Shown: in pieces, positions 13,874-16,915 of the stretch
How positions within the stretch are numbered: position 1 is the stretch's first letter
How the letters are laid out: each line of letters starts with the position of its first letter
Sequence record: MG655267.1
Strand: one strand, 5' to 3'
DNA: 64,000 nt
Notes under the pieces: generated by a model
What the model saw: the letters and a program-made list of their open reading frames with translations, nothing else
Database searches by the model: none
Told to the model about the DNA's origin: nothing
Translations under genes and position numbers: made by a program

Positions 13874-14590
13874 ATGTATGGTCTATTGATCTTAGCACTA
13901 CCCCGGTCACCGTACGTCCACATGAGTGCGATGACTGCGGACAGGTTTACTGAACTGCTCCCACAACTCCAGAAAGAGCTCGATGCAGATATCTTTCCTA
14001 ATGTGTGTTTCCAGGGTGCATTCAATGTCAGTAATACCCGTACGGTCACTCAGCTGTTTATTCCGTGTAGCGGATTGGTGGCGGCACGGGAGTTGGGGTA
14101 TGAACAGATCCGCAATATTCTCGCCAACCCAGAGAAGGAAGTCCAGCATGTCACCAACATCGGTGATTGGCTGGGTATTCCTGGTAAGGTGATGTTTGAT
14201 AATGCGGATGGATCTGTGGATGAGGTCGTTGTGACTGACATGTACAAATATCTGGTACATGAAAGAAGAGAGCGCTCTGTCTTTCGGTTCAGTCCTATTG
14301 ATCTTAGTATAACCGATACCGAACCATTACCAACTCACCTCTACCCACGTGATCATTTCTACGACCAGGTCTACCTCGACAAAGACGGCGAGCGTGCTTT
14401 CCTGTCTTACGGGTCGTGCGGTGAGGAAGGCTGTGTCATAGAACCCAGAGAAGAGAAACCCGTGCAAGTGTACGGCGTTACCTACTCGTCACTGGATGAA
14501 GTGGCCCGATGCTATAACCTGCCTGAGCAGTACGTGAAAGAACGCGTTGAGTCTGACAGCCTTGAATGGCTGGAGTGGTCATATTTGTAA
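13874..14590 (+). CDS. Hypothetical protein with C-terminal NUMOD1/IENR1-like HTH; paralogue of 18136..18918
   Basis: AAGGAG SD; VTNIGDWL and VTDMYKYL motifs shared with 18136..18918; C-terminal GVTYSSLDEVARCY. Confidence 0.75.
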   Translation: MYGLLILALPRSPYVHMSAMTADRFTELLPQLQKELDADIFPNVCFQGAFNVSNTRTVTQLFIPCSGLVAARELGYEQIRNILANPEKEVQHVTNIGDWLGIPGKVMFDNADGSVDEVVVTDMYKYLVHERRERSVFRFSPIDLSITDTEPLPTHLYPRDHFYDQVYLDKDGERAFLSYGSCGEEGCVIEPREEKPVQVYGVTYSSLDEVARCYNLPEQYVKERVESDSLEWLEWSYL

Positions 14591-14718
14591 AAGTATTTGG
14601 GGATGAGACGCAGAGCTGATTCCCATCTACGGTAAGTTGTTCAAGGAAGCAGCAAACCGGTTATAAAAAATGAAAGGGTTTTCGTAAGATAGTCAGTGCT
14701 CCGCACCCGAGACAATAC

Positions 14719-14916
14719 ATGACCACAAACCCGCAGTTTATTTTCGTGGCTCAGAATTCTGATGCTACACACAGCGTAGAGAAACTGGAAGTAGGACGCG
14801 ATACCGATACCCAGAAGAACCTCACGGAACTTCGTAAAGGTTTGCCGTTCGACTTCTCGTTTATCATGTCTGAAGAGGCGATCTATCAACTTCGACAGGC
14901 AGGGCACATCAACTAA
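14719..14916 (+). CDS. Small hypothetical protein
   Basis: 65 aa immediately upstream of the Tad2-like gene; weak SD. Confidence 0.55.
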   Translation: MTTNPQFIFVAQNSDATHSVEKLEVGRDTDTQKNLTELRKGLPFDFSFIMSEEAIYQLRQAGHIN

Positions 14917-14931
14917 ACTGCTGAGGTAGTC

Positions 14932-15384
14932 ATGACGAACAAATCGGAGATCTCACACGGTGGTGGTGATCAGCCTATGGAAAAAGAGCAAAGCAACTTA
15001 TCCGTACTGGTGAACTACTCCACAGGTGTGATGGAAGGTGACCGTTTTAATTACTCGGTTGCATTGGCGCTGTTGAAAGACGGCATCAAAGTGAAACGCG
15101 AAGACTGGAAGAACGCTTTCCTGGTGTTCGTCCCGGGTAGTCAGAATGTTGAACTGCCAAAAGGGTCGCCGTATGAAGTCGCACTCCACGGTAAGAAGTC
15201 CGTTGCCAATATTCGTCCGCACATCGATCTGTACACGGAGTACGGTGAATTCGAAGTCGGTTGGACCGCCAACCAGGAAGACACCAACGCCGATGACTGG
15301 ATGATTGTCTTAGACAAGAACACCAATCAAGACGACAGTGCCGACGAAGAGAAAGAGTCCTCAAACGACGACTCGAAGTCATAA
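14932..15384 (+). CDS. tad2: DUF2829 / Tad2-like anti-defence nucleotide-sponge protein
   Basis: FNYSVALALLKDGIKVKREDW...HIDLYTEYG...WTANQEDTNADDWMIV matches the Tad2/DUF2829 pattern F..AL..LK.G..V.R..W ... W...Q.D..A.DW.IV; GAGGT SD. Confidence 0.8.
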   Translation: MTNKSEISHGGGDQPMEKEQSNLSVLVNYSTGVMEGDRFNYSVALALLKDGIKVKREDWKNAFLVFVPGSQNVELPKGSPYEVALHGKKSVANIRPHIDLYTEYGEFEVGWTANQEDTNADDWMIVLDKNTNQDDSADEEKESSNDDSKS

Positions 15385-15418
15385 ACCCCAGGAGAGCTTC
15401 GGCTCTCCTTTTATGCCC
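15379..15418 (+). terminator. Hairpin (UUCG loop) + TTATGCC element
   Basis: AGGAGAGC-TTCG-GCTCTCCT followed by TTTATGCCC. Confidence 0.7.
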
Positions 15419-15433
15419 ATTAAGGAACATGTC

Positions 15434-15793
15434 ATGAGTGAAAAGAAAGCGTTTGAAGTGGTATTGGATAGCCGTCATGAACCGTACGAGGCTTACCAGT
15501 TATTAGTGGCTCGCATCAATACCTTATTGCGCACCGGTCAAGGCTACCATGAAGTGAAACTCACGAAGTGGCAGCTTTACGATAACGGTCTTCTTATCAA
15601 AGGAGATGATGATGTGCATATCTCCTTGTTGCGTCATTTCTATTACGACGAACAACGCAATACGTTTGGTGGTGGCTTCATGGCCTTTGAGATCCTGGAA
15701 GATTTGGGTCGGTACTACAAAGTGCCCGATATCACAGAAGGGATGGGCGAGAACGTTGGCCTCGTCTTCACGGTCACGGTAACCACACCATAA
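15434..15793 (+). CDS. Hypothetical protein, tandem family member 1
   Basis: AAGGA SD before ATG 15434; KGDDDVHISLLRHFYYD aligns with member 2. Confidence 0.75.
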   Translation: MSEKKAFEVVLDSRHEPYEAYQLLVARINTLLRTGQGYHEVKLTKWQLYDNGLLIKGDDDVHISLLRHFYYDEQRNTFGGGFMAFEILEDLGRYYKVPDITEGMGENVGLVFTVTVTTP

Positions 15794-15799
15794 GAGGTT

Positions 15800-16168
15800 G
15801 TGATGAAACCACTCTTCGCCATGAAGTTTGATACCCGGGATGCGGGATTAGGGGATCAACTCGATCTCTTGCAATCACGGGTGAAGGCTTACTCTAAACA
15901 CGGCACCATGATCAAAGATGTGGCGGTGACTGCCTGGGTGGTCTGTTCGGATAACATGCCAGTTGCCGGTGATGACCCTGCTCATGTCAGTATTATCCAC
16001 CGTTACCGTTACGACATCGAACAGCAGTGTGTGGTCGGTGGGGTCAGTGCCATGGATGCTCTGCGTGAGATCTGGTCGGCGTATGGTCCTGACTCTACCC
16101 TCCCACCGTTCAGCCGGATACCCGGTGCTGTCGATATGCAATTTACCTTAACTGTGTTCACTATTTAA
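15800..16168 (+). CDS. Hypothetical protein, tandem family member 2
   Basis: GAGGT SD; contains AGDDPAHVSIIHRYRYD and VAVTAW. Confidence 0.75.
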   Translation: MMKPLFAMKFDTRDAGLGDQLDLLQSRVKAYSKHGTMIKDVAVTAWVVCSDNMPVAGDDPAHVSIIHRYRYDIEQQCVVGGVSAMDALREIWSAYGPDSTLPPFSRIPGAVDMQFTLTVFTI

Positions 16169-16181
16169 AGGAGATACCCTC

Positions 16182-16571
16182 ATGGGAGTTTCTGCTGCTG
16201 CTCGTCGTTCTAAAGAAGGGGTGTTTACCCGTAGCATTGAAGTGCGTCCAGACCACTGGAAACGGGATATCACTGATTTAGGACTGGATGTCCATAACCT
16301 GGTGTTGTGTAAACAGGAGATCGTGTCAGTGACCGTCACGGCTTGGCGGGCGTATGACGAGTGCGGTGTACTGCGTGGTAGTGCCAAAGAGTTGAAGTTA
16401 GACATTACGGAATGGTTCCTCGGTGACAAAGGCCCGGTCATTAATGATGCGATCAAACCTCTCACGTTTGCCTTCATCATTAATCAACAACGCAGCCAAC
16501 GCACGCCCTGGGTAAAAGATGTCCGCTTAGGGCTTAACCTGTCCATTGTCTACAAGAGGATTCAGCAATAA
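16182..16571 (+). CDS. Hypothetical protein, tandem family member 3
   Basis: AAGGAG SD; VTVTAW motif; C-terminal strand LGLNLSIVY. Confidence 0.72.
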   Translation: MGVSAAARRSKEGVFTRSIEVRPDHWKRDITDLGLDVHNLVLCKQEIVSVTVTAWRAYDECGVLRGSAKELKLDITEWFLGDKGPVINDAIKPLTFAFIINQQRSQRTPWVKDVRLGLNLSIVYKRIQQ

Positions 16572-16915
16572 TGGAAATTGTCCACCAACTCGATCTTAGC
16601 CACGGCTGGGAACCCTTCAACCGCCTGAAAGCCGCCTTTGCCAAGAAACCCCCGGAGGCGATCCACATCACTGCCTGGGTTGCTCATGGTTATAAAGGAA
16701 ACCTCATCGGTGATGAGCAAGTGGTGAAAGGGTCGTGCCAGGAGTGTCGGATTGATGTGACCCACATCTTCTTCCCCAGTCGGCCTGAGATCTTGATTGG
16801 TTTGTCGAGCTTCATTAACACCATTAATCGTGACGGGCCGGTGAAGATCCCGGCCTGGACCGGATCGATTACTCTTTGTCTTGAATTAGCGATAAGTTAT
16901 ACGGATAGAATTTAA
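16571..16915 (+). CDS. Hypothetical protein, tandem family member 4
   Basis: GAGGA SD; TAATG coupling; IHITAW motif; C-terminal LCLELAISY. Confidence 0.72.
   Translation: MEIVHQLDLSHGWEPFNRLKAAFAKKPPEAIHITAWVAHGYKGNLIGDEQVVKGSCQECRIDVTHIFFPSRPEILIGLSSFINTINRDGPVKIPAWTGSITLCLELAISYTDRI

Follow-up and report, generated by a model that had tools for sequence, protein, structure and literature searches.

The window analysed here is a 64,000-nucleotide stretch of the genome of Erwinia phage vB_EamM_Bosolaphorus (MG655267), a member of the species Agricanvirus ray with a 272 kb genome and E. amylovora as its host. Over the 2.4 kb compared, window and phage record are 100% identical. Gene gp276 (annotated coding sequence BOSOLAPHORUS_276; 14932..15384, + strand) encodes a protein of 150 amino acids plus stop codon (AUG86062.1), which was deposited as 'hypothetical protein' and is matched by the Pfam model for Tad2-like proteins, PF11195. 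A Shine-Dalgarno sequence, GAGG, can be read 5 nt 5' of the ATG (14923..14926, +). Starting 6 nt past the stop codon, a terminator-like hairpin (AGGAGAGC-UUCG-GCUCUCCU, followed by a U-run; 15390..15414, +) has a computed RNA fold of -16.3 kcal/mol with a z-score of -3.6 against shuffled sequences; a simple consensus terminator scan did not call it.

gp276 lies within a run of small plus-strand genes without assigned function, downstream of the gene for the beta' subunit of the virion RNA polymerase, and a Pfam search of its neighbours gp274, gp275 and gp277 to gp284 returned no domain. The closest of these on the 5' side is gp275 (14719..14916, +; 65 aa), a possible partner or co-transcribed gene that ends 15 nt upstream of gp276. 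This 15-nt spacing recurs in Bosolaphorus, AH06 and the two metagenomic loci L135 and L136, even where gp274 is missing (L136). Across the same four genomes the last 24 residues of gp275 (PFDFSFIMSEEAIYQLRQAGHIN) are invariant and its first half varies. gp275 may be a partner or regulator of gp276. It matches phrog_11788, a PHROG without assigned function; the idea that it represents the missing N-terminal part of the longer members of phrog_1048 was discarded, as it belongs to this family of its own.

Among five E. amylovora agricanviruses, an island of low diversity of ~1.2 kb (14450-15700) spans the end of gp274, gp275, gp276 and the start of gp277, with 0-5 variable columns per 100 nt as opposed to 23-51 on both sides. 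Synonymous sites are invariant in this island, suggestive of a recent recombinational sweep or a constraint at the nucleic-acid level rather than protein-level selection alone. Directly 3' of gp276 follow four small genes, gp277 to gp280 (15434-16915), of which gp277 and gp278 both belong to phrog_6658, with gp279 and gp280 being of similar size. The array is mosaic: MadMel gp277 equals that of Deimos-Minion, and the gp278 of MadMel is separated from every other one by ~35 synonymous and 31 nonsynonymous codon differences. The number of genes in the gp277-type array differs in L135 and L136.

RAY, a phage of the same species, encodes an identical protein, gp273, which was detected by LC-MS/MS in a crude lysate with 18.7% coverage (PMC6690015 Table 3). 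It also builds a chimallin nucleus, as seen by microscopy and cryo-tomography (PMC10299810), giving experimental footing at the species level to the initial annotation's description of the source as a nucleus-type jumbo phage. Each genome carries one Tad2 domain. None was found in the five nucleus-forming phages checked (phiKZ, 201phi2-1, SPN3US, Asesino and PCH45), suggesting that, within this sample of nucleus-forming phages, Tad2 is accessory and belongs to the Agricanvirus lineage. Searching RAY with PF13876, the Acb2 family, revealed no Acb2-type sponge. PADLOC gave no match, as expected of an anti-defence gene.

Positions 14600-15500 were also used to search sequencing runs, and 20 runs from 12 studies were retrieved, mostly recorded as DNA, many of them metagenomes of plants, soil or the phyllosphere, and with no RNA run among them. 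Near-identical DNA of this segment occurs in metagenome runs from plant, phyllosphere, soil, rhizosphere, food and dairy sources. Given these hits, Agricanvirus-like phages with a gp276-type gene are environmentally widespread.

Family membership and fold of gp276

PF11195 matches residues 40-126 of gp276 over nearly the whole profile (positions 2-73 of 73; E 4.6e-14), with 53.2 bits against a curated gathering score of 25 bits, in agreement with the Tad2 pattern that the initial annotation had placed at residues ~38-125. A public, precomputed Pfam annotation already tags the protein cluster of gp276 as Tad2-like, and phrog_1048 matches the protein with an E value of 2e-47. A word-based protein search returned four close relatives. 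Searched against the PDB as a single sequence, gp276 found SptTad2, ModTad2 and Tad2 at ~1e-5, with SptTad2 as the best match; a profile of gp276 and nine relatives retrieved Tad2/AcrIIA7 chains only (E 6e-27 to 8e-17), again headed by SptTad2 (E 6e-27). By these sequence comparisons, the Tad2 match greatly exceeds what chance would yield.

An AlphaFold2 model, built on 54 aligned sequences (49 from outside the Agricanvirus clade and five from within it), is confident in its core (about residues 36-128; pLDDT 91-97). Its elements (H41-49, E54-56, E63-67, E70-74, H80-84, E91-94, E97-101, H115-119 and E123-125) reproduce the Tad2 pattern of an N-terminal helix, an antiparallel five-stranded sheet and a short helix before the last strand. 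Foldseek returned 24 PDB matches to the model at E<1e-3, all of them Tad2 with TM scores of up to 0.88 and an rmsd of 1.3-1.4 A to ModTad2, followed by the next match at E 0.46. VIA-align gave Z scores of 10.4-12.2 to SptTad2, HgmTad2, ModTad2 and SPO1 Tad2, and of 5.6 to the next fold. Profiles and model together indicate that gp276 encodes a Tad2-type fold, with a core at residues 38-128 (15043..15315, +) as delimited from AlphaFold2, Foldseek and VIA-align. The HMM and structure comparisons that had been proposed as a check (PF11195 at 53.2 bits; fold Z 10.4-11.1 to SPO1 Tad2) came out on the side of the family assignment.

Outside Agricanvirus, the nearest relative is that of Pectobacterium phage Momine (L006, 31823-32098), with 42% identity over the domain. 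It is a bare Tad2 of 91 aa, encoded by a 43-kb podovirus between two very large genes, one of which is annotated as 'diguanylate cyclase/phosphodiesterase'. Many Tad2-like proteins from IMG/VR (L018, L030, L042, L049, L089 and others) are 165-175 aa long and share a conserved N-terminal module of ~70 residues (IGTK...PM.R..YN..RGW.LP.DE.G.DEGYLVEY.DGG...GY.SWSP..F..AYR) covered by no Pfam model; another IMG/VR group (L022-L029) has a C-terminal extension of ~55 residues. By eye, 'VLVNYSTG' in the N-terminal extension of gp276 faintly resembles 'YLVEY.DGG' of this module.

As initially annotated, the gp276 core is flanked by an N-terminal extension (residues 1-37; 14932..15042, +; pLDDT 43-48) and an acidic, low-complexity C-terminal tail (residues 129-150; 15316..15381, +; pLDDT 52-64), both of which are predicted to be disordered. 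Net charge is negative in all three parts (N-extension -4, core -4, tail -5), adding up to -13 for the whole protein. Among relatives, the tail varies in length and sequence and is acidic in all, and we read it as constrained in composition only. The head proteases of phiKZ-type phages cleave at the consensus S/A/G-x-E; gp276 has a single such motif, A137-D-E139, which lies in the tail and not in the N-extension, and processing as in phiKZ Tad1 was dismissed as unsupported.

With Bosolaphorus as the reference, codon-by-codon comparison with AH06, L013, L135 and L136 revealed purifying selection on both the N-extension and the core. Synonymous to nonsynonymous differences in residues 1-37 amount to 3:1 (AH06), 15:3 (L013), 12:2 (L135) and 15:2 (L136), and those in residues 38-110 to 19:6, 24:5, 29:4 and 25:5, respectively. 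From these codon patterns, we read the N-extension as a genuine, constrained part of gp276 despite its predicted disorder.

The ligand pocket and its variation

In HgmTad2, gcADPR is bound by a W21-N22-G23 loop and a helix comprising W87, S90, T92 and D93, mutation of which abolishes binding; N22 and G23 contact the diphosphate, and a W21A/N22A mutant loses gcADPR binding (Li et al.). HgmTad2 was numbered here from the printed PDB alignment, and this numbering agrees with that of Li et al. at every residue they name. Aligned in this way, gp276 keeps three of these positions (W59, W111 and D117 for W21, W87 and D93) and shows replacements at others (S90 to N114, T92 to E116, V84 to E108 and M76 to L100). 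Its pocket loop, W59-K-N-A-F63 (15106..15120, +), has been shortened by a two-residue deletion that removes N-G.

This loop separates the clade from its relatives. All 49 sequences from outside the clade read W-N-G-[KR]-G-M-[WF], with N and G invariant, as against W-[KNS]-N-A-F, two residues shorter and devoid of N-G, in the five distinct Agricanvirus-clade sequences. The pocket helix (residues 111-121, W-T-A-N-Q-E-D-T-N-A-D; 15262..15294, +), which corresponds to W87-N97 of HgmTad2, is a hot spot of replacement: relatives read W-L-A-S-Q-[TS]-D-M-L, Bosolaphorus W-T-A-N-Q-E-D-T-N and AH06 W-T-P-T-Q-P-D-L-H, and the three metagenomic jumbo-phage alleles of the clade differ again. The 49 relatives were retrieved from IMG/VR by peptide patterns that included the pocket-helix motif, which biases helix conservation upward; the WNG loop lies outside these patterns.

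The balance of codon changes is inverted in this helix, with synonymous to nonsynonymous differences of 2:6 (AH06), 1:7 (L013), 1:5 (L135) and 1:7 (L136), as compared to about 6-9 nonsynonymous and 22-44 synonymous differences in the rest of residues 1-128. Fisher tests of helix versus rest gave p = 0.013 (AH06), 2.6e-4 (L013), 6.5e-4 (L135) and 1.5e-4 (L136), values that come from few lineages, from pairs that are not independent of each other and from a region chosen after viewing the alignment. Of the 21 positions in residues 1-128 that vary among the five clade sequences, eight lie within the 15 pocket-motif positions (p 4e-4). It is in the helix that lineages diverge, a pattern to be expected if selection acted on ligand specificity or on escape from recognition of the pocket.

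The gcADPR site is regarded as conserved in ~99% of Tad2 proteins (Li et al.). With its N-G deleted and the counterparts of S90 and T92 replaced, gp276 may be among the exceptions. A short loop by itself does not exclude sponge activity, as Tad2_79, whose loop W-S-K-D-V has the same short length and likewise lacks N-G (Hadary et al., bioRxiv 10.1101/2025.08.24.671296, Table S2), counteracted Thoeris of types I and IV, in liquid as well as in plaque assays (bioRxiv 10.1101/2025.08.24.671296). Several other homologues with divergent loops, such as Tad2_69 and Tad2_80, inhibited nothing in the same screen, and the tested homologues listed in its supplement include neither gp276 nor its loop variants (bioRxiv 10.1101/2025.08.24.671296). 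Other members of the family have proven versatile: MoTad2 binds His-ADPR as well as cUMP and cCMP, the latter at its A-C interface, and Tad2_71 binds N7-cADPR. Since the canonical pocket is remodelled and varies between lineages, and since Tad2_79 works with a short loop, other divergent loops fail and the family is versatile, the ligand of gp276 cannot be named from its sequence alone.

The initial annotation had located the peculiarity of gp276 elsewhere, namely in a central insertion that, together with the extensions, might alter its ligand range. The beta2-beta5 connector (residues 68-96) is of ordinary length, though: 29 residues, with 26-29 found in 52 of the 54 aligned sequences. It measures 24 residues in SPO1 Tad2 and 41 in the cyclic-dinucleotide-binding HgmTad2 (Li et al.). 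The second pocket of HgmTad2 and SptTad2 depends on an insertion of 35-41 residues together with R31, S47, F70 and N85, and mutations there abolish binding (Li et al.). gp276 lacks this cavity-forming insertion and, in the alignment, has V67, I94 and V109 in place of R31, F70 and N85 and no equivalent of S47. With its connector short and its contacts replaced, a second pocket of the HgmTad2 type, and CBASS inhibition by way of it, is unlikely in gp276.

By these alignments, the real deviation of gp276 lies in the canonical gcADPR pocket, with its shortened WNG loop and diversifying helix. The initial annotation is in this sense partly supported, being right about the family, plausible about the role and wrong about where the protein is peculiar.

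Candidate signals and host defences

As the initial annotation had argued, a phage nucleus does not stop defences that act through signalling; this logic is accepted for phiKZ, which carries and injects the Tad1 sponge (PMC13282480). In a survey of host defences across 50 species representatives of the genus Erwinia, and thus at the level of the genus rather than of E. amylovora specifically, ThsB_TIR was present in 8, TIR_2 in 14 and SMODS (CD-NTase) in 5 of the 50 genomes. At one locus (genome G009, L129; C1:1087875-1091156), a full-length Macro-type ThsA adjoins ThsB, constituting a type II Thoeris system (PADLOC scores of 4e-121 for ThsA1 and 4e-75 for ThsB). At another (genome G017, L131; C22:315382-318678), ThsB stands beside a patatin-like phospholipase effector. 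Either locus may be a natural target of the Tad2-type sponges that Erwinia phages carry.

With a probability of roughly 0.55, and largely by analogy with characterised homologues, we favour gp276 as a cytoplasmic sponge of the Tad2 family whose candidate ligand class is a TIR-derived ADP-ribose signal. The protein, which is made during infection, would assemble in the host cytoplasm into a homotetramer, a dimer of interlocked dimers, like every solved Tad2. The tetramer would then sequester a small immune signal derived from a nucleotide, the most plausible being a TIR-made derivative of ADP-ribose from a Thoeris-type system in an Erwinia or Pantoea host, such that the abortive-infection effector would never be triggered. 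In doing so, it would complement the phage nucleus, which shields DNA only.

A faint hint in the sequence points to type II Thoeris in particular. Those type II Thoeris inhibitors whose sequences are readable (ModTad2, Tad2_68 and Tad2_76) share W-x-P-S as the opening of the pocket helix (bioRxiv 10.1101/2025.08.24.671296). Three of the four other clade sequences start this helix with W-[TV]-P-[STN], the Bosolaphorus allele with W-T-A-N, and such an inhibitor-like helix start in the clade may be taken as a weak lead. Type II Thoeris is also inhibited by a Tad2 from a prophage of Tatumella, a genus that shares its family with Erwinia (bioRxiv 10.1101/2025.08.24.671296).

The alternative that fares best is that gp276 sponges another signal, be it a Pycsar cyclic mononucleotide, a CBASS nucleotide bound in a mode other than that of HgmTad2 or a signal not yet described, using a remodelled canonical pocket or a pocket at the dimer interface. 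Such a shift would be in keeping with the functional plasticity of the family (cUMP/cCMP and His-ADPR in MoTad2, N7-cADPR in Tad2_71), with a pocket loop and helix that are clade-specific, lineage-variable and rich in nonsynonymous changes, and with the CD-NTase genes in 5 of the 50 Erwinia genomes. We nonetheless judge it unlikely: the cyclic-dinucleotide contacts of HgmTad2 are all replaced, the connector is short, and Thoeris is the target of most Tad2 homologues tested.

A bolder and quite doubtful proposal is that the pocket has been rebuilt and is diversifying between phages of different Erwinia hosts, either to bind a signal not yet known to be sponged or to escape detection of the sponge itself, akin to Panoptes-like decoy sensing. 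The N-extension and gp275 would act as partners, and the whole ~1.2-kb module would have been swept recently by recombination through the E. amylovora agricanviruses.

It is improbable that gp276 retains the Tad2 fold in the absence of sponge function, serving instead as a protein or RNA binder or in some other infection role that involves its N-extension and perhaps gp275 as well. Both of the ligand motifs that the family conserves best are changed in gp276, the N-extension is constrained though predicted to be disordered, and the pairing with gp275 is invariant. Homologues of the AcrIIA7 type bind RNA in a basic groove, an activity modulated by an N-terminal head domain; headless AcrIIA7 is reported to bind tracrRNA, and the groove of pdAcrIIA7, on the core of the tetramer, is formed by K58, K66, K71, K93 and R101 (PMC13133391). 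gp276, in contrast, is acidic throughout by computed net charge, which argues against such a groove. It also keeps the W...W...D core of the pocket and shows an excess of replacements in the pocket helix only, suggesting that selection acts on the pocket.

Highly improbable, finally, is a virion-delivered sponge that acts before phage gene expression like phiKZ gp184/Tad1, with the N-extension or acidic tail as a packaging or processing signal: phiKZ does inject Tad1 (PMC13282480), the gp276 gene follows that of a virion RNA polymerase subunit and RAY gp273 turned up in a lysate proteome in which structural proteins predominate, but the sample was a crude lysate as opposed to purified virions (PMC6690015).

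Should gp276 indeed act as a sponge, RAY-like phages would provide a second and independent example of a nucleus-forming phage adding a cytoplasmic signal sponge to its DNA shield. A 2026 review names phiKZ Tad1 as the sole anti-defence protein described from jumbo phages (PMC13282480). RAY and E. amylovora form an existing experimental model, and the alleles of Bosolaphorus and AH06 along with the three metagenomic ones provide a natural series for studying how Tad2 specificity is set. RAY-like phages are, moreover, candidates for the biocontrol of fire blight, and the defences they neutralise bear on their host range.

Comparison with characterised sponges

No concept is changed by these findings, as the Tad2 family, its mechanism and the logic of 'nucleus plus sponge' have all been published. 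Rather, gp276 is a new and somewhat aberrant Tad2 member from a group of phages for which Tad1 was the only sponge previously described. phiKZ gp184/Tad1 is likewise proposed to remove immune signals from the cytoplasm, against which the nucleus offers no protection; it differs in belonging to an unrelated fold and family and in being packaged into the virion and injected.

Within the family, the founding anti-Thoeris type I sponge, SPO1 Tad2 (gp34.65; PDB 8SME-8SMG, 8WJE), shares with gp276 the fold (Z 10.4-11.1) and a short connector. Sequence similarity between the two is weak, with a single-sequence E value of 0.35, and the SPO1 protein consists of 90 aa without extensions. HgmTad2 and SptTad2 (PDB 8KBI-8KBM, 8WJD), which have one pocket for gcADPR and another for cyclic dinucleotides, are alike in fold (Z 11.0-12.2), yet they have a cyclic-dinucleotide insertion of 35-41 residues where gp276 has 29, and their N22-G23 is deleted in gp276. 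Tad2_79 (IMG/VR 3300001865_000012) resembles gp276 in the loop, with W-S-K-D-V facing W-K-N-A-F at equal length and without N-G; it differs in having only 80 aa and a very different pocket helix, W-K-E-T-M-I-E.

The best superposition on the gp276 model is given by ModTad2/MoTad2 from a Myroides odoratus prophage (PDB 9EIB, 8V3E; TM 0.88, rmsd 1.2-1.4 A, 30-38% identity, Z 10.8-11.4), which sequesters the His-ADPR of type II Thoeris and also cUMP/cCMP. Unlike gp276, it keeps the canonical WNGKGM loop and has neither an N-extension nor an acidic tail. Both proteins have a short connector and open the pocket helix with W-T-x, gp276 continuing as W-T-A-N-Q-E-D and ModTad2 as W-T-P-S-V-S-D; the W-T-P-S of ModTad2 is resembled by the W-[TV]-P-[STN] of three of the four other clade sequences. 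Type II Thoeris, the system countered by ModTad2, is present in the host genus of the gp276 phage.
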